From Geosiphon pyriformis uo1 (lineage: Eukaryota > Fungi > Glomeromycota): 64,000 nucleotides of DNA. Positions within the stretch are counted from its first letter, which is position 1, and every line of letters starts with the position of its first letter. Position numbers and translations under genes: made by a program. The stretch is taken from the NCBI GenBank assembly GCA_016748015.1, contig JAAOMT010000200.1, forward strand, positions 901,502 through 965,501. Direction: 5' to 3'. Below, in pieces: positions 4,381 through 62,598 of the stretch. Under the pieces are notes generated by a model that saw only the letters and a program-made list of their open reading frames with translations, did not search any database and was not told where the DNA came from.

Positions 4381-5521
4381 ATGGCTTTTGAAATTGATAG
4401 CATTCAGTTAACCGTTGTTATGTTTAGCGTTGTTATAAGTTTAGCTACAAGTACAGTATTAATACGATATATGTGGAAAAGGTTTACTTATCTGAGACTT
4501 GCTTGGTAAGATTTCTTTGATTGCGGTCTTTTGTTTTCAAATTGTTTTGAGTAATTAACAAAAAAAATTAACATTCTGCTTTTATATGTTCTCGACCCCT
4601 TCCCTTTTCAAAAGTGTTTTTGCAGGAATAACAATAATTCTCTTATCAACATGCAACCTTCTAAAAACCCTATTTCCAAACACAATCTACGAAAAGTGGT
4701 ATTGGTTCTGTTATGAACTTCTCTCGGGAACATACACCTCCCTAATTACAATTTTCTTATTATTCACTGGGCGACGATTTTATGCGCCACAATCTCGACA
4801 CAATAACCTTTTCAAATTTACATGTTTCTTTCTTTTGGCAACTATCATCGTACACGGGACAATTGCATTTTTTGTATTACCACCGCTAATACAAAGTTCT
4901 TCGACGCTTTCTGAAAAGTTTGAGATAAAAAAAGAACCCAATCTGAACTCATATATTGTTCAAGTGATAGTGAGAATGCTAGTTAGCGTCTTTGGATTTT
5001 TGTATGCTTTTATGCCAGTCTTACGCTTACAATTCCGTTCCATGAAAAAGGAATATGGAAATGCAACGAAACCTGACAACAATAATATGAACAAGTTGAA
5101 TAATAATGAAGGATCAACATATGATAGAAAAGAACTCAACCCACAAAATGCCGCAGTTGGGATATGGTACATGACCACCATTACATTATTAGTCGTATTA
5201 TACATTTCGTTTTACGCATCAGTATTCATTCTTGGGATGAAGAATTCGGTAGAAGGAAGCACAAAGGCTCCATTTTTGCCAGTGAATAATGCCATTGATT
5301 TTATTTTACGGATTGGAGTCTTACTTGTTTATGGTATTCCTCCTTCTGGAGTTGTGCTGAAATTTTTGATCAAGAAGATCAAAGGTAGTAACAAGTTGAA
5401 TACAAGTGATGATTTTAATATTAGTATACATGTTATAAAAAATTTTGATGAAGATAACACAACTATTAATGAAGATGTTGAAAGCAGTAGGGAAAGCCAG
5501 AAGGGCTGGTTAGATTTGTAG
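4381..5521 (+). CDS. Seven-transmembrane GPCR-like protein, ~343 aa, 2 exons (4381-4505, 4615-5521)
   Basis: ATG at 4381 opens MAFEIDSIQLTVVMFSVVISLATSTVLIRYMWKRFTYLRLA. The GTAAG donor at 4506 and the AG acceptor at 4613-4614 join in frame (TG+T=Cys) to the 4586-5521 ORF. Seven hydrophobic segments are visible, with a short N-terminus, a long polar loop between TM5 and TM6, and a polar C-tail. Confidence 0.75.
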
Positions 5522-6554: not shown

Positions 6555-8010
6555 TCAATAATAGGTAATACCAAGTATTGTTAAATAACACTCATCAAGC
6601 AATCCCCGGAGGAAGATCCCGGCAGTTGTACACATTGGACCTTCCGATTCTTTGGATTTTGCCATATTACAAGTCTTGGATTGTAAGCTTCGTTCTGGAT
6701 AATAATACGGACCCCTAATTCCTTAACCTTGCTGATTAGACGTTGTCGAAAACAATAATGTCCCCAACAATGCATTTTCCAAACAGTTTTTCGTGTAATC
6801 TTTCTTGTCTTGCGATTCACTATCTCTGAAACTTCAAAAGGAGGAAATGACAATGGCATCGAATTCGGGAAAAAATCTAACTGATTTCCAGTGATTTCAC
6901 TTTGCATACATACAGCTTTTCGCCACACTCGAAATCGCCTTATCGAGTCGCCAGGCCATTTATTTTTACATTTTGAGGAGGATACTAATAAATTATTCTT
7001 TTTGCAGATTATATCATCCAAGTATTTGCAAATGCCAACATAGGTCCAATAGAATGTTCACCAATCTTATATGCACCGTTTGTGGGAGAGTACCATGTAA
7101 AAGGTGTATAAGCTCCAGAATTAAATAGAGACTGTATGAACAGAGCTATTCGCTTGGGTTTCGCAGAGCTGTTTTTATGTCTCATATACTCAGACTAATT
7201 CTACTCATTAATTTTGCGAGAATAAGTGAGCTTGCCATCCGACATTATCTGGTGAAAAACCGGCCGCTATTATTATGTCTCTTTTTTCCGAAATGAAAAG
7301 GCCTTATCATTATCCAGAATGATGGTACGCTTATAACAATGTGTGTAAGCATCATCGGATTATGGAGATAAGTGACATAGAAACGTTTCTATGTGGATTT
7401 CGAAAATTTCTGTGCACGAATTGTCAGTTTGTCGCAGATCTTTCAAGATCGAAATGATAGTGTGTTGATAGGCCTTGCCGATTCGCATTACACTTAATCA
7501 CTTCTTCCTTAGCAATAAATACTTCATCAATTTTATCAGTGGGCGCTTTGCCGTGCACACTCCAAAACATTCTGAGACACACAACAGTTCGGATGAACTT
7601 GCGCTCATCCCATGTTCGGAGTTTTTTGTCTTCGTTTTCATTAACTTAATTTCCAGGCAGAAATCTGTTTAAAGCTCAAGTTATCTTGATGGATTGAGTC
7701 TTCATCCAAGAGTGTTGATATGGGTGATGTCGACACTATTAGACAACGATACTATAAGCAAATCTCGTCAAGCCCAGCCACCGCTTCAAGAGCTGCTTTT
7801 GAAGATGTTTTAGATACACCTTGATTAATAGTGAATTGTTGAGAATATCTGATATTGCTACGAGCTGTTATGCGTTTTTCGTCTGCTATGATGCTCCCGT
7901 CAATAGCAGCCAGCTGCATGCGACAGATAAAGACTGTGTTGATAAAAATGTTTATGAAGAGGTCGGCAAAGTATATCCTGGTGGGTGACCACAACTTTCG
8001 AGACCATTCC
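6555..8010 (-). pseudogene. Decayed TnpB-family / Fanzor2 RNA-guided nuclease (IS607 OrfB-like), with multiple frameshifts, stops and deletions
   Basis: Motifs appear in order across shifting frames: WSRKLWSPT (~8005-7985); LIKVYLKHLQKQLLKRWLGLTRFAY (OrfB N-terminal helix, ~7830-7755); FRS*K..LTIRAQ; SDGKLTYSRKINE; CETQ..VSI / SGAYTPFTWYSPT (RuvC-I region, ~7165-7085); FPPFEVSEIVNRKTRKITRKTVWKMHCWGHYCFRQRLISK; IIIQNEAY-SKTC (RuvC-II and start of Zn finger); GKIQRIGRSNVYNC; GIFLRGLLD (C-terminus). Confidence 0.85.
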
Positions 8011-33750: not shown

Positions 33751-35310
33751 ATGTTACGCTCCGCTTTTCGAGCCACAAATATAATTGCTCGTCGTAGCGC
33801 TTTGTCAACAAGTTTAATTTCAACTTATTCGACTCAATTTTCAAATATTGTTCATAAATCTCCTGTAAGATTCATCACTGAAAGTGGTGCTCCAAAAGGT
33901 GCAGCTATCACGAGTAGTGCTTATGCAAAGCCCTCGATAAACAACGACACCAGCGATAAGGATCGTGACGCAATTTTGCAACAAATTCCAGCCGAATTGC
34001 TACGTACACCTCATCCAAGACCTGTTCGTAATGAATTCATCGATGCGAAGAAACCATTGACAACGAAAGATCTGGAGAAAATTGATATTAAAATTAATTT
34101 GCATCGTGAACCAGTTACCTTCAAGGACAAAATTGCTTATACTGTGGTGAAATTGTTAAGAATTCCAACGGATATGTTCTTTAAGAAGAAATATATTCAT
34201 CGATCAGTTATGTTGGAAACGGTAAGAATTTTCGGTCTAAAAATAACTGTTAATTTTAATTTTTCATAATTCGAGATTTCGTTCAACGTCTGGAAAAGGC
34301 TCTTTCAAAATAGTTCTTCCTAAATCAAATTTGCATAGGGGTGCACAGCCTTCTGTAATTATGATCAAAACAGATCAAATTAATACGAGAAAACTATGAT
34401 ATTAATACTTTTCTTTGTAACTTTTAGCGTAAATGGAACTTTCTCGTACCTAATATATTCCTTAAACCTCTGATTTTTAGGTTGCTGCCGTACCAGGAAT
34501 GGTTGGGGCTACACTCAGACATCTTCGATCACTTCGTAGAATGAAACATGACGGTGGTTGGATCGAACATTTGCTACACGAAGCAGAAAATGAACGGTAA
34601 TAATCTGCTAATTCTCGTTATAATTCAGAAGGTGGGCTCTAATATTTACGGATAAGGTTTCAATTTTAGCATGCACTTACTGACATGGATGCGTTTTTCA
34701 CAACCCAATCTTTGGGAAAGAGGCTTAGTTGCTGTTGTTCAAGGCGTTTGGTATAATGTCTTTTTTGTTTTATATCTGATTAGTCCAAGTACTGCTCATC
34801 GCGTTACCGGTTATCTTGAAGAGGAGGCAGTCATTAGTTATACATCTTTTTTGAAAGGTGTGTTTTTAATAAGTTTATCATGATTTTGCGTGTAAAGCTT
34901 GATATTGATTCTTCGAATTTTTTCCTTAGAGATCGATAATGGTAATATTCAAAATATTCGTGAAGTACCTGAGATTGCTTTAGAATATTGGAAACTTGAC
35001 CGAAATACTGCTACCTTACGTGATGTTGTCCTAGCAGTGCGTGCTGATGAAGCAGTACACAGGTAATTTATTTTTTTATGAATTTAAATGAATTGGATAT
35101 TTAATCTCAATGGATTAAGAATACAGTCCTAAGAATATTTCTTTATACATGTATAGGGATTCCAACCACCACTTTTCGGATCGTCTGATTCTTCATCGTG
35201 AAGATTTAAGAGAAGATATCAAACTTGTTATAGCAGAGGAAGTGGCGAACAAGAGAAATAAAAATATTGCCGGTTTGAATCATAATGCAAATGAAAAATG
35301 GGCACACTAA
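33751..35310 (+). CDS. AOX: Mitochondrial alternative oxidase; 5 exons (33751-34221, 34481-34596, 34670-34857, 34930-35062, 35157-35310)
   Basis: The spliced product has the di-iron motifs [27 protein letters not shown] and [12 protein letters not shown]. All introns are GT-AG and in frame, and there is an N-terminal mitochondrial presequence. Confidence 0.96.
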
Positions 35311-47227: not shown

Positions 47228-47672
47228 CTGGAATAATCAAAATTTAGAGTTTTTAATATTGTCTGTGAGTAAATATGTATTCATTGTACAACTATAACAC
47301 GTTTTACAGAATACCCTTTAAAAAGCCTGTTTACGGTATTGTAAATTCATGCATCCGCTATGTAATATATTGCATTGCAAAGAACAATGACCCACCTTTT
47401 GCCTTTTTAGACTAATAATCTGATATGTTTTTAGGGCATTGTTAGTATTGCTTTAACAATGCATCTATTAAATTTATGATTAAATGAAATAATATTTTGA
47501 CTTTTTTAACATTCTGCTTCAGTTAATATTGTTTCTTATCACATCTTTTTCTATAAAATTGATCGTGCCCTTACAATTTCTTTCATTTAATCCAACCAGA
47601 AGAAGTACGAAAAAAGAAAAAGAAATTGAGTTCTCAAATTCAAATTAAACCAAATCAAATAACTTAAACAAA
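47228..47672 (+). promoter_or_regulatory. Conserved ~450-bp promoter block of the peptide genes (copy 1 shown): HMG-type sites and a TATA box
   Basis: TATAAAA lies at 47552, 51274, 54906, 56811, 59194 and 62345, which is 111-122 bp before each ATG. AGAACAAT lies at 47381, 51091, 54721, 56627, 59032 and 62191. An inverted CATTGTTA-N8/9-TAACAATG is present in copies 1, 3, 4 and 6. Confidence 0.7.
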
Positions 47673-47804
47673 ATGCAACCAACAACCAACAATCAATCCT
47701 CATTCAATCCGCTCTCAATCATTGCTCCTGGCAACGGCTCAATTAAAGGACCAACCGGTGACCCAGACGATGGCAGTGGCACTGGTCAATGCTCGATCAT
47801 GTAA
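47673..47804 (+). CDS. a-factor-like lipopeptide pheromone precursor, copy 1 (43 aa, CAAX = CSIM)
   Basis: ATG in an AAAATG context; MQPTTNNQSSFNPLSIIAPGNGSIKGPTGDPDDGSGTGQCSIM-TAA; the protein is identical in six copies with only synonymous differences. Confidence 0.85.
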   Translation: MQPTTNNQSSFNPLSIIAPGNGSIKGPTGDPDDGSGTGQCSIM

Positions 47805-50800
47805 AAGTTGCAGAGTATTCATATTGAAGATTCTCTTTTCCTACCATCCCAGTAAATTGTGTGAAAAATTATCGTCGGGGCTTCTGAATTACATACTTCA
47901 AATTAATATAATGCAAATTTGGACTTTTAACATAGATATCTAGCTCTGAAGAATCAATAGTAAAGCAAAAGTCAGTATAATTACTCGCAACGAAAGGATA
48001 CTGCATATTTCTCTTTCACTATTTTTTATTATTAATTGTATATTAACGTTATAGTAATATAATTTGATTGGTTCTACCAAATGTTAAATAAATTATTTCT
48101 AGTATTTAAATTTGGTAATAAAATGTTCTGATTCAAGACCATAAAATATTCTTCTCTCAAAGCTAATTGGACCTTTAAAAGTATATTTCTTAATGGCGAA
48201 GTGAAACTTGAAAGTCAAATAAAACCTATTCAATTTTTACTAATTTAACTGAAGGCATTTAAATATTAAAATATAAAATCAAAAACTTAAATTAAAAGCC
48301 CTGATGCTTTTTACTGTTAATAAATTTCTGAATTTAGTTTAGAAAACTATAAAATTGTTTTCACCATGCAAGAAAATATTTTAGATTAAATTAAAATTTT
48401 ATAAATAAGAATGATAGTAATTTTAAATTATTATTTTAATTTTAATTTTATCAGCAACACAGTAGCAAAAGTTTTGAAGTTTTTTATATAGCTTTCAAAT
48501 TATACATATATCAAACCAAAAAAAGTGAAGCTTATTCCTTCAAACTATTATTCTATGTTGAAAAAAGCTATTTCCTAAAGTCTATTTTGAAATTTTTCGC
48601 AGATTTAATCCAAAAGCGATTGACAAGAAGACTGCGATAATTGAATTATAAATTGTGTGAAAATCAAAAAAATCAGTTATGAAAAATTCTATAGCTTGAA
48701 TTACTTAGCTACCTTAATTGTTTGATTTCGCGCTTTATATTAAAGCTGAAAATTTTAAATTGATATGGGATAATAATAATAAAAAATTTCAAAATTTATT
48801 TCGTTTTATTATTAATTTTCAATTCTAAGGATTGTTCGCTTTAGAAATTTTAAAACCAGGGTTTTTTCTTAAATATATTTGTGTATTAAATATTAATAAC
48901 TTATCAACTCCATTAAAATTCTCATTCTGTATTATCATAAATCTATTTCTCAATTATTTCAGTGAATTAATAAACTGTCAAAAGTTAATATAAAAATGTA
49001 TATCTTTTTGATGTTAGAGATATTAGGCTCAATTGAAAATCGAAAAGCTCAAATTAAATTGTTATCGTATAGTAATAGGTCATTTTTGAGAATTTAGAAT
49101 CATGGCAGAACCCTTTTGGAGATTTTAATTAATAGACTCTCCAGAATTAATTTATTTAAACTTGTGATTTATTTCAGTTATATTCAGGTCAAAAGTACAA
49201 AATATGATATTTACAATGCTTATGTCTTATATATTTTTACTCTTTCTCACGAAATTTATGTCAATGGAGTTTAGTAAAGGTGCTTCACATAAGAGGATAA
49301 AACTATTTTTAAATTTTACATTCATAATAACTCAATACTCACAAGATTTTGATTCAATCTAATGAAAAATAAGCCATTTTCAGAGTGTTAGCAATATTAT
49401 CAAAAAAAATAAAAAAGTAATAGATACTATAAAGCTCCTTAATATTATTGCAATATACTATAGATAACAGGAAAATTGAAACCCTATTTAACAAATGGTA
49501 ATGCACTTAGGCAATCTCTTCTTGTTGCATAAAAAATTCCCCTAAAAAAATTTGTTCCGAAAACATATATTGATATAATTATGCAAATTCTATTTTTTTC
49601 GGGTTTTGAGCACATCATAAAAATTTTGAAATTAAAAAAACTCTCCCAGCTGCTGAAATAGTGATAGAACTTTTTAAAGAGTAAGCAAAGTCTATTTTAT
49701 TTACCTCATATTCACCTTGAAAATTATTAAATTTTTGAAACAAAGAGATTAAAAGTTTGCAATAAATATATCCATTAATTAAAATACAATTTTTTCTCCA
49801 CACTCAATATATTCTTTTACATTTTCTTATTTGAAGTTATGAGTTTCTTAAAATATTTTGTGGTATTAAAAAATTAACTCTAATTTATAGTTTTAATATG
49901 AATTAAAAATAAAAGTTAAAATACCGAAGTTTATATGAAAAAGTATTTCAAAGAACAATTGCTTTTGTGAAGAATTATATTTTTAATACTGCTTTAAAAA
50001 AAATTTAAATGGAAATAATATTAGACTTGTAATTTTCTTGTTTTTTTATTGAACTTAGTTATTAAGCATCGAACCTTTTGATATAAAATTTAGAATTTGT
50101 TTTTATTGTAATCTAATTTAAAATCTTATTGATGAGTTTATAACAACAAATATTTAAAAAAATTTCAGCTCCATTTAATTAAAAAATATTGAAATTTGGA
50201 ATATACAAAGATTGTCAAACAAAAATTTATATAAAATTCGAATTATAAATTAAATAGCAAAAGATGTTTGTTAATCATAAATAACTCATAAAAAGTGCTA
50301 AATTTCTTACCTATTAACAAAAAGAATATTATTCAATCAGAAAATAATATCATTAAATTCTTACATTGTAAAAAATACCCTCAAACATCATTAAAGAAAA
50401 TAAATGCAAAGCTCTTCATTGGTTAAAACAATGGATAATAAAAACAACAATTAAAAATGAAGCAAATGTCTAAACGTTGATTTAATTTTTTTTTTATTAG
50501 TATTTAAGCTGCAACAGAACAATATCTACTTCAAATTGGTCACCAATATATTGTTTTTTATTTGAAATTTCCTATATTTCTATTCGACTTAAGAATTGAA
50601 GAATAAACGAGAATTGTTAAAGATTAACTCTTTGAAATAAGATCAAATTATCTAAAATTCAGTCGAACTATTTTATATTCAGGAAGTTTAATTTTTCTAT
50701 ATTAAGATTGGATAGTTAATTTTCTCTTTCAAAAAAGGTATTTAGAGACTAAAAAATTATCAATAAAAATCAAAAATGTCAGAAAACGAGATAAAAAGTG

Positions 50801-51387
50801 GCATCATGTAGCGTACACATTTTAAAAACTAGACTAATAAAAAGTTTAGATTTTATTAAGTGATTTGAGCTTTCTCATTAATTAATTATCTGTACCTATA
50901 GTTTATTTAATTGAGATTTCAATTTAAAAACTTTTTTCCTCTGGAATAATCGAAATTTAAAATTTTAGCATTGTCCGTAAATAAACAAGTATTCTTTGTA
51001 CAACTATAACACGCTTTGAAGAATACCCTTTTGAAAGTCTGTTTACGGCATTGTAAACTCAAGAATCCGTTCTATAATATTGTAGTGCAAAGAACAATGG
51101 CCCAAATCTTGCCTTTTTCGACTAAAATAATCAATTATAAGGGCTGATCCATTTTTTAGGATATTGTTTGCATAGCATACAATTCATCTGTTAAATTTAT
51201 GATTAAATGGAATATAATTTAACTTTTTTAACATTCTATTTCAATTTATATTGTTTCTTATCACATCTTTTTCTATAAAACTGGTCGTGCCTTTACAATT
51301 TTCTTTTCATTCAATCCAACCAGAAGAAAAGGAAAAGAAATTGAATTCTCAAATTCAAATTATATCAAATCAAATAACTTAAGCAAA

Positions 51388-51519
51388 ATGCAACCAACAA
51401 CCAACAATCAATCCTCTTTCAATCCACTCTCAATCATCGCTCCTGGCAACGGCTCAATTAAAGGACCAACTGGTGACCCAGATGATGGTAGCGGCACTGG
51501 TCAATGCTCAATCATGTAA
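51388..51519 (+). CDS. a-factor-like pheromone precursor, copy 2
   Basis: Same 43-aa peptide; 8 synonymous differences from copy 1. Confidence 0.85.
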   Translation: MQPTTNNQSSFNPLSIIAPGNGSIKGPTGDPDDGSGTGQCSIM

Positions 51520-54500
51520 AAATTGCAGAGTATTCATATTGAAGATTCTCTTTTTTCGACCATCCCAGTAAATTGTGTGAAAAATTATCTTCGGGCTTCT
51601 GACTTACATACTTCAAATTAATATAATGCAAATTTGGGCTTTTAACATAGATATCTAGCTCTGAAGAATCAATAGTAAAGCAAAAGTCAGTATAATTACT
51701 CGCAACGAAAGGATACTGCATATTTCTCTTTCACCATTTTTTATTATTAATTGTATATTAACGTTATAGTAATATAATTTGATTGGTTCTACAAAATGGT
51801 AAATAAATTATTTCTAGTATTTAAATTTGGTAATAAAATGTTCTGATTCAAGACCATAAAATATTCTTATCTCAAAGCTAATTGGACCCTTTAAAAGTAT
51901 ATTTCTTAATGGCGAAGTGAAACTTGAAAGTCAAATAAAACCTGTTCAATTTTTACTAATTTAACTGAAGGTATTTAAATATTAAATACAAAATCAAAAA
52001 CTTAAATTAAAAGCCCTGATACTTTTTACTGCTAATAAATTTCTGAATTTAGTTTAGAAAACTACAAAATTGTTTTCACTATGCAAGAAAATATTTTAGA
52101 TTAAATTAAAATTTTATAAATAAGAATGATAGTAGTTTTAAATTATTATTTTAATTTTAATTTTATCAGCAACACAGTAGCAAAAGTTTTGAAGTTTTTT
52201 ATATAGCTTTCAAATTATACATATATCAAACCAAAAAAAGTGAAGCTTATTCCTTCAAACTATTATTCTATTTGAAAAAAAATATTTCCTAAAGTCTATT
52301 TTGAAATTTTTCGCAGATTTAATCCAAAAGCGATTGACAAGAAGACTGCGATAATTGAATTATAAATTGTGTAAAATTAGTCATGGAAAATTCTATAGCT
52401 TGAATTACTTAGTTACTTTAATTGTTTGATTTCTTGCTTTGTGTTAAAGCTGACAATTTTGAATTAATAGCCTAATAGTAGAAAAAGAAAATTTCAAATT
52501 AATTCGTTTTCATATCAATTATTGATTCTCAGGATTGTTTGCTTTCTAATTTTGAAACAAAGGTTTTTTTTCTTAAATCTATTGGTGTATTAAATATTAA
52601 TAACTTATTAACTCCATTTAAATTCTCATTCTGTATTATCATAAATCTATTTTTCAATTATTTCAGTGAATTAATACACTGTCAAGATTTAATATAAAAA
52701 TGTATATCTTTTTTATGTTAGAGATATTAGGCTCAATTGAAAATCAAAAAGCTCAATTAAATTGTTATCGCATAGTAATAGGTCATTTATGAGAATTTAG
52801 AATCATCGGCAGATAGTTTAATACCCTTTTGGAGACTTTAATTAATAGACTCTCCAGAATGAATTTATTAAACTTGTGATTTATTCCAGTTGCCAAGTGG
52901 TTATATTTAGGTCAAAAGTACAAAATATGATATTTACAGTGTTTATGTCTTATATATTTTTACTTCTTTCTCTCGAAATTTGTTTCAATGAAGTTTAGTA
53001 AAGATGCTTCACATAAGAAGATAAACTATTTTTAAATTTTACATTAATAATAACTCAATACTCACAAAATTTTGATTCAATCTAATAAAAAATAAGCCAT
53101 TTTAAGAGTGTTAGCAATATTATCAAAAAAAGATAAAAAATTGTTAGACACTATAATTATCATTGTAATATACTATAGATAAGAGGAAAGTTGAAACCCT
53201 ATTTAACAAATGTTTATGCATTGTGTTTTCTGCTTTGCTTTGAAACAATATTTTATTGTTATATAAGAATTCTCCAAAAAGATTTGTTCCCAAAAATAGA
53301 TTAATATAATTACCAATTCTATTTTTTGTCGGATTTTGAACACATTATGAAGTCTTGAAATCGTCCCAAAAGCTGAAACCTTTAAAGAGTAAGCAATATT
53401 TATTTTGTTCATCTTATATTCACTTTGAAAATATTAAGTTTTTGAAACAAAGAGATTAAAAGTTTGCAATAAATATATCATGAAATTAAAATTTAATTTT
53501 TTTCTCCACACTCAAAATATTCTGTTGCATTTTATTATTTGAAGTTATGAGTTTCTTAAAATATTTTGTGGTATTAAAAAATTAACCCCGAATTTATAGT
53601 TTTAATATGAATTAAAAATAGAAGTTAAAATACCGAAGTTTATTATGAAAAAATACTCAAAGAACCATTGCTTTTGCAAAAGATTATATTTTTATGCTTA
53701 TTTGAGAAAAAGCTATATTTCAATAATATTGTACTTGTAATTTTCTTGTTTTTTTCTTGAATTTATAGTTATTAAGCATCAACTTTTTGATATAAAATTT
53801 AGGATTTGTGTTTATTGTAGTCTATGTTTAAATTTTTTATCATAAGTTTATAACAACAAATATTTGAAATTTTTTTCAGCTTTTATTATTAATATTAAAT
53901 ATTAAATATTCAAATGTAGAATATTCAAAGATTGTCACATAAAGATTTATATCAAACTCGAATTAATATTATCTAAAATACAAGATAATTATTGTTTAAA
54001 TAGTGAAAGATGCTAATTAATAATAAAAAACTTATAGAAGACGCAGATTTTCTTAGATTTTAGCGAAAAAAAATATTAACATTAAATTTTCAGAGTTTAG
54101 AAAATACCCTCAAAAATCATCAAAAAAAATAAATGCATAAAGTGCAAAGCTCTGCATGGTTAATACAATGGGATAATAAAACTGATATTAAAGTGAATAA
54201 ATTGTCTAGACGTTGATTTGATATTTTTTTTATTAGTATTTAGGCAACATAACAATATCTACTTCAAAACTGTATTGTATATTCTAATTGAAATTTCCTA
54301 TATTCTATTCACTTAAGAATTGAAAAATAAACGAAGAATTGTTAAACATTAACTCTTTGAAATTAGCTAAACTTGGTCAAACTATTTAACTTTTCAGAAG
54401 TTTAAGTTTTCCATATTAAGTGAGTTATGTATGTACACATTTAAAAACTAGACTAATAAAAAATTTGAATTTTGTCGGGTAAATCATGTGACTTGAACTT

Positions 54501-55024
54501 TCTCATAATAAACTTTCTGTACCCACAGTTTATTTAAATGAGGTTTCAGTTTAAAAACTCTTTTCCATCTGGAATAATCGAAATTTAGAGTTTTAGCATT
54601 GTCTGTGAATAGACAAGTATTTTTCGTTCAACGATAACACATTTTGAAGAATACACTTTCGAAAGCCTGTTTACGGCATTATATATTCATGCATCCGCTA
54701 TATAATAGGTTGTAATGCAAAGAACAATGACCTACCTTTTGCCTTTTTAGACTAATAATCAATTTTGAAATCTGAAATGTTTTTGGGACATTGTTAGCGT
54801 AACTTAACAATGCGCCTATCAAATTTATGAACAATTGGAATAATAATAAATTGGCTTTTTTAACATTCTGCTTCAATTAATATTGTTTCTAGTCACATAT
54901 TTTCCTATAAAATAGATCGTGCCTTCCCAACTTCTTTTCATTCAATCCAACCAAAAGAACTAAAAGAAAAAAAGAAATTGAACTCTCAAATTCAAATTAA
55001 ATCAAATCAAATAACTTAAACAAA

Positions 55025-55156
55025 ATGCAACCAACAACCAACAATCAATCCTCATTCAATCCGCTCTCAATCATCGCTCCTGGCAATGGCTCGATTAAAG
55101 GACCAACTGGTGACCCAGACGATGGTAGCGGCACTGGTCAATGCTCTATCATGTAA
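55025..55156 (+). CDS. a-factor-like pheromone precursor, copy 3
   Basis: Same 43-aa peptide; ends TGC TCT ATC ATG TAA. Confidence 0.85.
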   Translation: MQPTTNNQSSFNPLSIIAPGNGSIKGPTGDPDDGSGTGQCSIM

Positions 55157-56921
55157 AATTCGCAGAGTATTTATATTGAAAGTTCTCTTTTTTCGACCAT
55201 CCCAATAATATGTGTGAAAAATTATCGTCAGCACTTCTGAATTATATACTTCAAGTTAATATAATGCAAATTTGGACTCTTTACATAGTTATCAAGCTAT
55301 TAATAATCAATAGTAATGCAAAAGTCAATAGGATTATTTATAATGAAATGATATCGCATATTTCTCTTCACTATTTCTTAATATTAATTGTGTATTAGTA
55401 TTATAGCATTACTTTTATAAATGTCATTGGTTTTACCAAAGTTTAAATAAAATGCTTCTAGCATTTAAACTTAATAAAGGAAAGCTTTAACTCAAGGACT
55501 GTGGAACTTTTTCCTCAAAAAAAATGTGGTTTCTATCATATAAAAAATACTGCTACTCAGGTGCTTTTAAGGTATATTCTTGGTGAACTTGAACAATTAA
55601 ATTATTTAACGCAAAAATTGAGCCTTAGATATTTGGAATCCCCCCAAAAAATAGAAACCTAAATAAAAAATTTAAGTTTTTACTGCTAATAAAATTTTTG
55701 CTTTGAAATTATGAAATGCATAGCTACTATTTAAAGTATTTTAAAATATGTTATGAACTATTTTTCACTACTTTTTTTAGATTAATAAAAATCTTGATGA
55801 CATAACTTAAGTTTTTGAATTATTGTCTCTAATTTAAATTTTACGGGCAAAAAACATTGACATAAATATATAAAGTGTTACAATAGAAGGTTATAAGACT
55901 AAAAAAAATAAAGCTAGATATAAAATATATTAACAATTAAATATGACATCCTTTTGAAAATATCGAATTATTTAAATTGGGTTAAATTGTTTCGCTCTTT
56001 AGCAAGTTTCGGTTTGAATTTCTAATTAGCAGCTATTCGAATAAGTCATTGAAATAATTAAATTACAAGGCAGGCATCCTTACAATTAGTATAAGAGAGG
56101 CTAGCAAATTTATCTTAAAACTAAAATAATAATAAGTGTCAATTTGGTTTGGGTAAATCGAATGATTCGAGCTTTTTAAAATAAATTTTCATATGCACAC
56201 TTAGCAAATAGTCATTAAAGCCTCATAACTTAAATAATATTTTTTACTAATTACTTATTAATTCAAAGTTTCCCTCATATTAATTTTGAAATTAAAACGC
56301 ATTCTGTTTATAGATTGATACTTATACTAAAAGTCATTTTATTCCCGATTTTTTATGGATATTTGTTTATGAAAAGGTTCAAAAAAGATATTCATTTACA
56401 ATCTTAAATTCAAAAGCATTTTGCATGCTAGTAATAGATTTTCTTGCATGTAATACTCATTTAGCATACCGTTAAACATTAGATGGAAATTTAGAGTTTT
56501 TAATATTGTCCGTGAATGAACAAATGTTTTTTCTACAACTATAACACATTTTTGAAGAAAACTCTTTTGAAAGCCTGTTTATGGCATTGTAAATTCATGC
56601 ATCCGTTCTATAATATTGTAGTGCAAAGAACAATAACCTACATATTGCCATTTTCGACTAAAATAATCAATTTTAAAAGCTGATCCGTTTTTAGGACATT
56701 GTTAGTATAGCTTAACAATGCGTTTATCAAATTTCTGATTAAATGGAATAATAATTTGACTTTTTTAACATTCTGCTTCAGTTAATATTGTTTCTAATCA
56801 TATCTTTTTCTATAAAATAGATCGTGCCTTCCCAACTTCTTTTCATTCAATCCAACCAAAAGAACTAAAAGAAATTGAACTCTCAAATTCAAATTAAATC
56901 AAATCAAATAACTTAAACAAA

Positions 56922-57053
56922 ATGCAACCAACAACCAACAATCAATCCTCATTCAATCCGCTCTCAATCATCGCTCCTGGCAACGGCTCAATTAAAGGAC
57001 CAACTGGTGACCCAGACGATGGTAGCGGCACTGGTCAATGCTCGATTATGTAA
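56922..57053 (+). CDS. a-factor-like pheromone precursor, copy 4
   Basis: Same 43-aa peptide; ends TGC TCG ATT ATG TAA. Confidence 0.85.
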   Translation: MQPTTNNQSSFNPLSIIAPGNGSIKGPTGDPDDGSGTGQCSIM

Positions 57054-59313
57054 AAGTTACAGAGTATTCATATTGAAAGTTCTCTTTTTTCGACTATCCC
57101 AGTAAATTATGTGAAAATTATCGTCGGCACTTCCTCAAGTTAATATAATGCAAATTCGGACTCTTTATATAGATATCTAGCTCTTAATAATCAGCGGTAA
57201 AGCAAAAGTCGATAGAATTACTCGCAACTAAAGGATACTGCATATTTCTATTTCACTCTTATTTAATATTAATAGTGTATTAGCATTAGAGTAATCGAAT
57301 TTGGTTAGTATTAACAAAATATTCCTAATATGTAAATTTTAATATTAATAGACTTTAATTCAAGAACGTTAAAACCTTTTTTGCTCAAGTAAAATAAAGC
57401 TATTTGGACCTTTAAAAATATCTCTCTTAATATCAAAGTGAAACTTGAAAGTCAAATATGAACCTGTTCAATCTTTACTAACTCAACTCAAACCTGATAT
57501 TTACCTTGAATTATTAAATTTTTTAAAGCAAAGAGATTAAAAGCTTGCGATAAATATATATCAACCAATCTTTGAATCATATTTCTCCTATCAAAATTCA
57601 GTGAAATTCATATTAAATGTTTTATTTGCGCTTAAAATATTCTATTTCATTTTTTTATTTGAAGTTATGAGTTTTTCTTAAGCATATCTTTTAACATTGA
57701 GAAAAATCTAATCTCTAATTTATACTTTTAATATGAATTGATAATAGAAGTTAAAATACCGAAGTTTATTATACTAACAATTGAAAATACCTATAAAAAA
57801 AGATTGCTTTTGCAAAAAATTATATTTTTTAATACTACTTTAAGAAAAAACCTGTAGTGCACTTGTATTTTCATCAACTTTGATGTAAAATTTAGAATTT
57901 ATTTTTTATTGTGATCTAAGCTTAAAATTTTATTGATGACTTTATAATAATAAATATTAAATTTGGCATAATCAAGGTGTTTTTATATAAAAATTTAAAT
58001 CAAATTTGAACAAAATTTTTACCGCAATATTGCAACATAATGTTTTTTTAAATAGTAAAGATGCTAATTATTAACGAAAAGATAATATCTAATCAGAGAA
58101 TATTATTCGTAACTTTTTAGAATGTAGAAAATACTCTCAAAAGATTATTAAATGCACAGATGTAAAGCTCTTTATGGTTAAACACAATGGGTTAATGAGA
58201 CTAGCACTAAAAATGAATGATTTGTCTAAACGTTAATGTGATATTTTTTGGTATTTAAGCTTCAGATTATAGAATTCAAAGAATATTTATAACTCAGACA
58301 GAACAATATCTACTTCGAAACTCGCATAAAATCTATATTGTTTGTTTTAATTGAAATTTTCCTATCTTCCTATTTTCGACTTAAGCATTGAAGAATGGAA
58401 CCAGATAGTGCTCGAACGGAGATAAAGAATTGTTAGACATAAACTCTTTGAAAAAAATTTAAAGTATTTCACTTTTAAATTTGCGATAGTAAGAGTTGAT
58501 AGCTAGTTTTCCCATTCAAAAATATTTAGAGATAAATGTTATATTAAGTGAGTTATTTAATGTAGAAATCCTATAATTTATTCTAAAATTAGACGAATAA
58601 TTAGCAGGAGTTTATTTGAACCTAATATAAATAAATTTATTTAAAAATATTTTCAGTTCTACCCAAATCAATTCTGAATTTAAAAGCATTTGTTTATAAA
58701 TTGATACTTTTTACTAAGAAAACAAAAATGTTATTATTTCACATTAACTGAATTGCAAATCTAGCATATTTTAATTCCGAAGAGATCCTAAAAAAGATCC
58801 CTATTTACAATTTGAATTCAAAGGTATTTGGCATGTTAGTCATAAATTCTCTTGGATGTAATACCGTTAAACATCAGGCACTGGAATAATCCAAATTTAG
58901 AGTTTTTAGCATTGTCCGTTAATAAACAAGTATTATTTGTACAACTATAACACGCTTTTGAAGAAAACCCTTTTGAAAGCCTATTAACGGCATTGTAAAT
59001 TCATGCATCTGTTCTATAATATTGTAGTGCAAGAACAATGACCTATATCTTTCCTTTTTCGACTAAAATAATCAATTTAAAAAGCTGATCCGTTTTAACA
59101 ATGTGTCTATCAAATTTATGACTAAATGGAATAATAACTTGACTTTTTTAACATTCTGCTTCAGTTAACATTGTTTCTAATCATATTTTTTTCTATAAAA
59201 TTGATCGTGTCTTCCCAATTTCTTTCCATTCAATCCAACTAAAAGAACTAAAGAAAAGGAAAGAAATTGAATTCTCAAAATTAAATTAAATCAAATCAAA
59301 TAATTTAAACAAA

Positions 59314-59445
59314 ATGCAACCAACAACCAACAATCAATCCTCTTTCAATCCGCTCTCAATCATCGCTCCTGGCAACGGCTCAATTAAAGGACCAACTGGT
59401 GACCCAGACGATGGTAGCGGCACTGGCCAATGCTCGATTATGTAA
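59314..59445 (+). CDS. a-factor-like pheromone precursor, copy 5
   Basis: Same 43-aa peptide; the G38 codon is GGC. Confidence 0.85.
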   Translation: MQPTTNNQSSFNPLSIIAPGNGSIKGPTGDPDDGSGTGQCSIM

Positions 59446-62400
59446 AAGTTGCAGAGTATTCATATTGAAAGCTCTCTTTTTTCGACTATCCCAGTAAATT
59501 GTGTGAAAATTATCGTCGACACTTCCTCAAGTTAATGTAATGCAAATTCGGACTCTTTATGTAGATATCTAGCTCTTAATAATCAGCGGTAAAGCAAAAG
59601 TCGATAGAATTACTCGCAATTAAAGGATACTGCATATTTCTCTTTCACTATTTTCTAATATTAATTGTATAGTAACATTATAGTAATATAATTTGATCAG
59701 TTTTACTAAAGGTTAAATGAAATATTCCTATATTTAAATTTGGTAATAAAATGCTTTTATTCAAAACCATAAAACTTTTTTTACTCAAATAAAATAAAGC
59801 TAATTGGACCTTCAAAAGTATATTTCTTGATTGTAAAGTAAAACCTGAAAGTTAAATCCGAAACTGTTTAATCTTTACTAACTCAACTCAAGGCATTCGA
59901 ATATTTAGGTGTTCATAAGTCTTATAAAATTAAAAAATTAAATTAAAAAGCTTTGATACTTTTTATTGCTTTAAATTTCTGACTTGAGTTGAAAATAAGC
60001 AAAATTAACACTCTATTTAAAAACTTATCAGGAAAGTAGTAGCAAAAAATTTCGAATTTCTTTATATAGCATTAAAATATACAAATAGTTTCACATATAT
60101 TCAGTCTAAAGAAGTTAAAAAATAACTTAAGGCTTTTTCTTCTAAGTTAACATAAAAAAACCTCGAATGATTATTCTCTACTGAATAAAGTCATTTACTA
60201 AAATCTAATTATGGTCGGCTCTTACGCTTTCCATAGGTCTGATCCAAGGCTCTTTCATATGCAGAACGGAAACAATAAAATTTTATAGCTATTTTTCTTA
60301 GCAGTTGCTACTAAAGTAATAACCTTTCAATATTTGTATTTCTTTATTCTGGTGCTTGTGATAATTAAATTTTTTAGCCTTTGATTATAATAGCTAGTTT
60401 AAAAAAAATTGATTTTGAAGATATTAGGCTCAATTAAATATTGAGATTTCCACTAAATTTATATTAAAATATCAGATAATTTTTATTGCGATTGCAAGCT
60501 GTAAAGTCATTTTTGAGAATTTAGAGTTATCGGTAAATAGTTTAAATTTCTTTTGGAAAATTTAAAACATAGAGATTAATTATAATTGATTTAAATAATA
60601 AGAAATTATTTTTTGGAATTTGAAGGATAGATCGAATTTTGTGATTCATTCCTGTTGCTGAGCGGGTAGGTTTAGGTCAAAAGTAGCTAATGTTATAGCA
60701 TAATTAGTATAAATATGAAATTTGCAATATTTAGGTCTTTTGTCTTTTTACAAAATTTATTTTAATCAATTTTTTGTCAAAGGTACTTCACATAAGAGGA
60801 TAAAAATATTCTAAATTTTAATTAAAATAATAAAAACTAAGCAATTTTTAGAGTAACAGATACTATAGGGGCTACTCATTATCACTGTGATATGCTATAG
60901 GTGAGAACCTATTTATTAAATTCTAGTGCAGTGTATTTTTTGCTCTGTACTTTGAAACAATAATGAATTCATTTAGAAACTATTAAAATTTTAAAAGCAA
61001 AGAGATTAAAAGCTTGCGATAAATATATTATCAAACAATACTCTCAACTCTATTTTTTGATATTAAAAAATTTAAACCCTTTAATTTACACTTCTAATAT
61101 GACTTAAAAAACAGAGGTTGCAATGCAGATGTTTACTATACCAATAATTGAAAAATCCCTCAAAGAATGATTACGAAAAATTATATAGCAATAATATTTT
61201 ACCTATAATTTCCGTGTTTTTGTTTAAAATTTATAGTTATTAATATCAATTTTTTTAATGTAAAATTTAGAATTTATTCTTTATTGTAATCAAAGTTTAA
61301 AATTTTGTTGATGACTTATAAAAATAAATACCAAAACTTGGAATAACACACAAAATTTGAATTCAATGCGAATTATAAGCTAAACCATGTTTTTTTCTTA
61401 ATATTATTTGAATAATGCAACATAAAGAATTCAGTATTAATTGTTAGGAGTATTTAAATAATAATTAAATATTAACAAAAAGAATAATAATTAATCAAAA
61501 ATTATTTTCTAAGTGTAGAAAATATTTACAAAAAAGATTTATTATTAAAAAATAAATGAATTGTCTAAACTTTAATTGATATTTTTTTAGTATTTTAACT
61601 TTACTTTATAAAATTCTATAGTTCTTGCAGAACAATATCTACCTCAAAACTCGCATAATATATGTATTGTTCAATCTAATTGAAATTTTCTTTTATTTTA
61701 TTTTCGACTTAAGAATTGAAGAATAGACGAAATGGTTGACAAATGCAGATGAAGAGTGATTGAACATAAACTCATTAAAAAATTAAATATCCAAGATTGT
61801 CCAATTATTTTACTCTTTAGCGGGTTGAAATTTGCAAAGTAAGAGTTGACAGTTAATTTTTCCATTCAAAAAAGGTATTTAGAGACTAGTAATATTATTT
61901 CAAAATTAAAAATATTAGAACACACAAAAAAATTCTTATAATTTAATCTAAAAATTAGGCTAACCATTAACAAATTTAAGAATCTTTCATATCTACTTAA
62001 ATTAATTCTGAAAATTAAATTCATTAGCATAGAGTTAAACAGAATAATTGAAATTTAGAGTTTTTAGCATTGTCCGTGAATAAACATGTATTCTTTGTAA
62101 AACTATAACACGTTGTGCAGAATATCCTTCCGAAAACTATTTATGGCATTGTTAAGTTCATGCATCCCTATATAATATATTGTAGTGCAAAGAACAATGT
62201 CTACCTCTTAAAATCTGACATGTTTTTAGGGCATTGTTAATATGGCTTAACAATGCGTCTATCAAATTTATGATTAAATGGAATAATAATTTGACTTTTT
62301 AACATTTTGCTTCAGTTAATATTGTTTCTAATCATACCTTTTTCTATAAAATTGATCGTGCCTTCCAAATTTCTTTTCATTCAATCCAACCAAAAGAACT

Positions 62401-62466
62401 AAAAGAAAAGGAAAAGAAATTGAATTCTCAAATTCAAATTAAATCAAATCATATAACTTAAACAAA

Positions 62467-62598
62467 ATGCAACCAACAACCAACAATCAATCTTCATTCA
62501 ATCCACTCTCAATAATTGCTCCTGGCAACGGCTCGATTAAAGGACCAACTGGTGACCCAGACGATGGCAGTGGCACTGGTCAATGCTCAATAATGTAA
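62467..62598 (+). CDS. a-factor-like pheromone precursor, copy 6
   Basis: Same 43-aa peptide; ends TGC TCA ATA ATG TAA. Confidence 0.85.
   Translation: MQPTTNNQSSFNPLSIIAPGNGSIKGPTGDPDDGSGTGQCSIM

Follow-up and report, generated by a model that had tools for sequence, protein, structure and literature searches.

The pheromone precursors of the a-factor type in ascomycetes, such as Saccharomyces cerevisiae MFA1/MFA2, Schizosaccharomyces pombe mfm1-3 and the Yarrowia a-factor, are short, single-exon CaaX precursors without a signal peptide. They carry an Asn 5 to 20 residues before the Cys, occur in several copies whose mature part shows synonymous change only, and are unlinked to the receptor gene. 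The pheromones of basidiomycetes (Ustilago mfa, Cryptococcus MFalpha and those of the agaric B locus) are CaaX precursors of about 40 residues; the HMG-box factors Prf1 and Mat2 act on their promoters, a Ste3-type receptor perceives them, and their genes adjoin that receptor at an allelic pheromone/receptor (P/R) locus. Within Glomeromycota, Rhizophagus and Glomus possess one STE3 and a STE6, and searches by homology revealed no gene for a peptide pheromone there (PMC3834313). Here, we describe a family of peptide genes in Geosiphon pyriformis (Glomeromycota, Archaeosporales), represented by six open reading frames (ORFs) in the final 64 kb of contig JAAOMT010000200.1 of assembly GCA_016748015.1, a stretch referred to below as the window. 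These ORFs probably constitute part of a high-copy, a-factor-type lipopeptide family, whose product would be a farnesylated pheromone for the orphan Ste3 of Glomeromycota.

A six-frame scan of the 64-kb window reveals six plus-strand ORFs of 132 nt, each running from ATG to TAA, which share one 43-aa product, and all six products end in Cys-Ser-Ile-Met-stop. The ORFs are located at 47673..47804 (copy 1, peptide coding part 47673-47801), 51388..51519 (copy 2), 55025..55156 (copy 3), 56922..57053 (copy 4), 59314..59445 (copy 5), and 62467..62598 (copy 6). In copy 1, the CaaX box plus TAA, read from the sequence, occupies 47790..47804 (+). Start-to-start intervals are 3715, 3637, 1897, 2392, and 3153 nt, and the copies sit in direct duplicated units, 1.9-3.7 kb apart and about 65-88% identical. 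No other ATG-to-canonical-CaaX-stop ORF of 20-104 aa exists anywhere in the window, and tblastn shows no further or decayed copies there. The scan thereby bears out the sequence-only reading of this DNA, which had reported six 132-bp ORFs for an identical CSIM-ending peptide and had placed the genome in Glomeromycotina or Mucoromycota, a guess that fits its actual source. That reading had also termed the peptide unannotated, which is right for copies 3, 4, and 6, for which there is no gene model on record; copies 2 and 5 coincide with the mis-spliced NCBI models G9A89_021139 and G9A89_021140, and copy 1 probably with the mis-spliced G9A89_021138. Database matches of the peptide are to the N-terminal parts of hypothetical G. 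pyriformis proteins, and locus L002, fetched with these models, is identical to the tail of the window. The six-gene array it described is real as a set of tandem copies but does not stand alone, as it belongs to a genome-wide family.

Pairwise differences among the six copies amount to 2-11 nt in the coding sequence (CDS) and 7-16% in the flanks; the copies are hence not recent clones. Fourteen codons are variable among them, and all of the distinct changes (16/16) are synonymous, giving proportions of synonymous (pS) and nonsynonymous (pN) differences of 0.22 and 0, respectively, with a neutral binomial P of about 1.3e-10. As a control, four of the five alternative frames vary in all 14 columns, while the remaining one, antisense and in register, varies in 4 columns and has stops. 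All-synonymous change implies that the coding frame is under purifying selection and, at some stage, translated. Judged by this substitution pattern, the six ORFs are protein-coding genes under strong purifying selection.

Beyond the window, the loci of mis-spliced gene models bring the total to 23 intact Geosiphon copies on seven contigs, with the identical peptide in 17 and CSIM in all 23. The safe count is 22, as two identical copies at one locus (L009) flank a gap of Ns. These two copies (L009:4208-10132) are in inverted orientation with the gap between them and possibly represent an assembly duplication. A second head-to-tail array, with at least four copies of the identical peptide (L011:2173-10132), precedes the start of the window by 1.2-9 kb; it shares contig and strand with the window array. 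Window positions 54622-59961 are 82.5% identical to L011:1772-7177, a match that covers three of the L011 copies and reflects segmental duplication between the arrays. A tree built from coding plus flanking DNA unites all six copies of the window with the four upstream of it and with two from contig JAAOMT010000761.1 in one clade (support, 100/99), which indicates local expansion inside a dispersed family; the third copy on that contig and one L009 copy were left out because of Ns in their flanks. A core set of 20 Geosiphon copies has a pS of 0.37 and a pN of 0.004. The only amino acid changes among them fall at positions 15, 16, and 18, all before Asn21, and residues 22-40 are invariant.

Homologs were identified in Ambispora leptoticha and Ambispora gerdemannii by exhaustive phmmer and profile searches of short proteins. 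The Ambispora loci contain seven unspliced ORFs of 39-43 aa that end in CVIM (five), CVIV, or CIIW, and the Cys at -4 and the stop are retained in 7/7. One A. leptoticha ORF (L005:14447-14566, minus strand) is 39 aa long, lacks three residues after the Asn, and ends in the less canonical CaaX CIIW. Over 11 Geosiphon and Ambispora sequences, which span two families, Asn21, Gly26-Pro27-Thr28, Asp30, Gln39, Cys40, and Ile42 are invariant. Cross-genus identity is 13-15/21 for residues 1-21, 7-8/9 for residues 22-30, and 1-4/8 for residues 31-38. Between species, the latter two ranges are 7-9/9 and 1-5/8, and residues 31-38, the stretch that adjoins the Cys, vary most. The pattern of conservation across genera is mixed, not clearly strongest in the predicted mature region. 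Relatives in other genomes, which the sequence-only reading had suggested seeking, were found by phmmer and profile searches in the two Ambispora species but in none outside Archaeosporales. The profile search of short proteins returned only Geosiphon and Ambispora, a result with little bearing on unannotated ORFs elsewhere. Scanning metagenome contigs, viral contigs, and a prokaryotic collection with a profile of Geosiphon and Ambispora sequences gave no relatives; the single bacterial match was rejected as an internal chance match with neither a start nor a CaaX, which leaves a bacterial or endobacterial origin without support. Comparison of the peptide with PDB sequences and the ESM Atlas gave no match.

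The 43-aa peptide, read directly from the sequence, has a polar N terminus and neither a signal peptide nor a transmembrane segment. Its C-terminal half is polar and acidic, and the AlphaFold model is unstructured (predicted local distance difference test [pLDDT], 54; predicted template modeling score [pTM], 0.16). The a-factor pipeline that Srikant et al. applied to Yarrowia, with which the a-factor of that yeast was found and validated, requires a CaaX ending, a length of <100 aa, conserved homologs, and several copies (bioRxiv 10.1101/2021.09.28.462209). Their N-X rule describes an Axl1/Ste23-type site in which X is aromatic or uncharged and 5-20 residues lead to the Cys (bioRxiv 10.1101/2021.09.28.462209). 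The peptide family shows every feature selected by these filters, namely, CaaX, size, N-X site, copies, and conserved relatives. X after Asn21 is Gly in most of the 11 sequences, and the 19 residues to the Cys fit the rule. On the basis of the invariant Asn21 and Cys40 and the N-X rule, the predicted mature peptide is Gly22-Cys40, of 19 residues, encoded in copy 1 by 47736..47792 (+). As for the CaaX endings, yeast a-factor with CSIM is farnesylated, cleaved by Rce1, and supports mating equal to that of the native CVIA form, and CVIM is likewise prenylated and cleaved in yeast (PMC9231725); yeast reporters process both endings (PMC9231725; PMC11152559). On sequence evidence, then, the family can be provisionally assigned to the a-factor-type precursors.

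Comparison with the described systems brings out both likeness and difference. With the ascomycete precursors, the family shares the short, single-exon CaaX form without a signal peptide, the Asn 5-20 residues before the Cys, the several copies with synonymous change only in the mature part, and, in the loci seen, the lack of linkage to a receptor gene. It differs in having no detectable homology to them by Pfam or phmmer, in lying outside Dikarya, and in its copy number, at least 22 in Geosiphon against 1-19 in yeasts. The predicted mature peptide is also longer, acidic, and aromatic-free, and the N-terminal half is unusually conserved. With the basidiomycete pheromones, it shares the CaaX precursor of about 40 residues, and we propose a counterpart of their HMG-box control and Ste3-type receptor. 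However, whereas basidiomycete pheromone genes adjoin the receptor, the Geosiphon copies are spread over at least seven contigs. As no STE3 lies beside any copy examined, this is not a P/R locus of the basidiomycete type, and the arrangement would rather resemble the unlinked ascomycete type. The orphan STE3/STE6 pathway belongs to the same phylum, and an a-type ligand was predicted there but not found by homology (PMC3834313). That study (PMC3834313) covered Glomerales (Rhizophagus and Glomus). Our phmmer and profile searches found no homolog of the peptide there, and the pairing of ligand and receptor is hypothetical. Finally, Rhizophagus has KEX2-processed repeat proteins with alpha-factor-like STE13 signatures, which are, like the Geosiphon peptide, candidate peptide signals of Glomeromycotina (PMC6339444). 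These proteins have a signal peptide, repeats, and a secretory route (PMC6339444), in contrast to the single-unit, cytosolic-type CaaX precursor described here.

The upstream regions are also conserved. Each window copy has CTATAAAA 111-122 nt upstream, along with conserved ATTGTT/AACAATG motifs, in keeping with the earlier claim that each copy has a conserved promoter of its own: the TATA box and the ATTGTT/AACAATG motifs precede all six. All upstream regions given here are on the plus strand. That of copy 1 (47380..47558) contains AAGAACAATG at 47380, an ATTGTT..AACAAT pair at 47438-47460, a proximal ATTGTT at 47528, and the TATA box at 47551. Copy 2 (51090..51280) has AAGAACAATG, the inverted pair with a single arm intact, the proximal ATTGTT, and the TATA box. 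Complete inverted pairs, together with a TATA box, are found upstream of copy 3 (54720..54912, pair at 54790-54811), copy 4 (56626..56817, pair at 56698-56719), and copy 6 (62146..62351, pair at 62233-62254), and copy 5 (59031..59200) has the left arm of the pair deleted and the other motifs and the TATA box kept. Among Geosiphon copies, a TATA box occurs 95-130 nt upstream in 22/22, an ATTGTT shortly before it in 21/22, and the inverted pair ATTGTT-N8-13-AACAAT in 16/22. The window contains four such pairs, each upstream of a copy, compared with 0.4 expected from shuffles, and AACAAT in six diverged promoters is 3- to 5-fold over shuffled expectation. In Ambispora, whose promoters have no evident likeness to those of Geosiphon, upstream AACAATG occurs at 1.33 per 340 nt versus 0.09 in GC-matched background, an excess of about 15-fold. 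The AACAATG signal of Ambispora, which belongs to a second family, is independent of the Geosiphon signal.

AACAATG fits the HMG-box core A(A/T)CAA(A/T)G (PMC3730723), and the motifs are treated here as candidate sites only. The HMG factor Prf1 drives the pheromone genes of Ustilago (PMC3248468), although the Ustilago element ACAAAGGGA differs from the Geosiphon motif AACAATG, which often occurs as an inverted pair. In the upstream regions of the copies, the Ste12-type TGAAACA is not enriched, and the Prf1/Ste11-type ACAAAG is not clearly enriched.

If the family does encode a pheromone, HMG-box factors would switch on the copies, and the cytosolic precursor would be farnesylated on Cys40, lose SIM to Rce1, and then be carboxymethylated. 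An Axl1/Ste23-type protease would cut after Asn21, and the resulting lipopeptide of roughly 19 residues would be exported via a Ste6-type ABC transporter. It would act on the Ste3 of a neighboring hypha and prepare partner recognition and fusion, which would serve a cryptic mating or parasexual step. Having so many copies would raise the dose, and the species-variable residues 31-38 next to the lipid may give specificity. We infer these steps from the known yeast pathway. That Glomeromycota run a working lipopeptide pheromone/Ste3 system under HMG-box control, with this family as the ligand, is in our estimate slightly better than an even chance. The sequence-only reading had proposed a lipopeptide pheromone, and the testable sequence hallmarks of such a precursor (CaaX, size, Asn site, copies, selection, and Ambispora homologs) stand, with HMG-type motifs present in the promoters; function is what we only infer.

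Several points weigh against a pheromone. Known pheromones are short and hydrophobic, and the predicted Geosiphon peptide is longer and more acidic, with three Asp and no aromatic residue. The N-terminal half of the precursor is conserved to almost the same degree as the remainder, in contrast to the variable one of the Yarrowia a-factor (bioRxiv 10.1101/2021.09.28.462209). In this phylum, a sexual cycle has never been observed (PMC3834313). By phmmer and profile searches, no homolog was found outside Archaeosporales, the Glomerales with the described Ste3 included. Neither the called genes nor the ORFs scanned in the window and in the Geosiphon loci fetched, which represent part of the copies' neighborhoods, include a STE3 domain. 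By themselves, promoter motifs predict pheromone genes poorly, and the promoter P values are overstated, as the copies are related and not independent samples. Nor did the 11 members give any Pfam match at E values up to 10, a negative that carries little weight because homology among pheromones is expected to escape detection beyond about 100 million years (bioRxiv 10.1101/2021.09.28.462209).

The same pathway could also export a lipopeptide with a non-sexual role, in self-recognition before vegetative anastomosis or as a density, autocrine, or developmental cue, possibly via Ste3. The sequence evidence for processing applies equally to such a signal, and a single assembly holds essentially one peptide in at least 22 copies, with no linked receptor seen, a number above the 1-19 of yeasts (bioRxiv 10.1101/2021.09.28.462209). 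Mating is unobserved in the phylum (PMC3834313), and HMG factors control anastomosis too in Podospora (PMC3730723). Nevertheless, the region adjoining the lipid diverges between species, as expected for mate recognition. Every characterized Ste3 ligand is, to our knowledge, a mating pheromone, which also counts against a non-sexual role, and we regard that role as unlikely. More doubtful still is an intracellular prenylated microprotein that remains whole on the membrane as an adaptor, inhibitor, or prenyl-substrate sink, neither cut at Asn21 nor exported. Conservation over all 43 residues, with 13-15 of the first 21 identical between genera, would suit such a protein, as would the polar, acidic C-terminal half. 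Yet there is no predicted fold and no known domain, the eight residues adjoining the Cys vary most from species to species, the changes among core Geosiphon copies all precede Asn21, and more than 20 copies would be unusual for a housekeeping membrane microprotein. A lipopeptide addressed to the symbiotic partner, Nostoc for Geosiphon and plant roots for Ambispora, would accord with high copy number in an obligate symbiont and with a family found only in Archaeosporales. It strikes us as very improbable, however, since the family is conserved in fungi with unrelated partners, a cyanobacterium in the one case and plant roots in the other, and we know of no partner receptor for such a peptide.

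The least credible alternative, to which we give hardly any weight, is that the ORFs serve as the first exons of longer genes with introns, as modeled by NCBI, or else repeat passengers or an assembly artifact. The sequence ATGTAA at the end of the ORF does hold a GT donor-like site, and the NCBI models splice there or a few codons before. The predicted introns of G9A89_021138-021140 delete the stop or the entire CaaX and append tails that differ in each copy and are mutually unrelated, on which ground we rejected the spliced models. The CaaX and stop, in turn, are preserved in 30/30 copies examined, and we take the models to be artifacts. The differences between copies in CDS and flanks indicate neither collapsed nor duplicated reads, and the spacers contain no long ORF and no terminal inverted repeat that would speak for repeat passengers. 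That gene predictors splice such genes away may explain why they were overlooked earlier.

A system of this kind is known; the novelty would lie in its occurrence outside Dikarya, in the number of copies, and in a ligand that can be tested on an orphan receptor, in a lineage where sex has not been observed. In the literature searched, from whose coverage most subscription journals are absent, there is no description of a lipopeptide pheromone in Glomeromycota. Sex in arbuscular mycorrhizal fungi is a long-standing open question, and STE3 and STE6 have been known since 2013 with the ligand missing (PMC3834313). If the pheromone reading is true, farnesylated peptide pheromones extend outside Dikarya, and the family offers, for the first time, molecular access to a cryptic program of mating or cell fusion in the arbuscular mycorrhizal lineage. 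Confirmation would imply that lipopeptide pheromones predate Dikarya or arose twice, and it would open hyphal recognition in a major group of plant symbionts to experiment. A defined 19-residue lipopeptide can be synthesized and tried on its cognate receptor in yeast without fungal culture, and short multicopy Asn..CaaX ORFs with AACAATG-rich promoters offer a search recipe for other genera.

The neighbors of the array in the window are ordinary, comprising genes for a pentatricopeptide repeat (PPR) protein, an alternative oxidase (AOX), a DUF4238 protein, and a Sel1 fragment. The AOX gene (33751-34269, plus strand) lies 13 kb upstream of the array, and the AOX of Podospora is a mating-type target with an HMG site (PMC3730723); the proximity is probably a coincidence. 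Between the two arrays, a gene at 4381-5521 (plus strand) encodes a 343-aa multi-pass membrane protein without a Pfam match above the cutoff. It was considered as a Ste3 and rejected, showing instead weak feature similarity to GPR137/TOM1-like seven-transmembrane (7TM) proteins. An open stretch at 6581-7057 (minus strand) resembles, by eye, a transposase tail or TnpB-like remnant, and Pfam gave no match for it. At the other side, the contig ends 1.4 kb beyond copy 6, and copies of the same clade lie near the end of JAAOMT010000761.1 (L001). The two contigs may be adjacent, and the cluster may then comprise 13 or more copies.

Two more Geosiphon copies, at L003:7772 and L008:10001, are more divergent than the core. 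The former (L003:7772-7903) has six amino acid changes and a decayed inverted promoter pair with the CaaX intact, and it is possibly under relaxed selection. The latter (L008:10001-10132), the most divergent copy in Geosiphon, has 8 amino acid changes and lacks the inverted promoter pair. Both this copy and an Ambispora copy (L005:13235-13360) lie directly upstream of a gene for a membrane protein of ~750 aa, and the two neighbors are homologous, with 30% identity. The shared neighbor could be due to chance, the gene perhaps belonging to a large family, or it could mark a site of ancestral synteny or a second type of pheromone.

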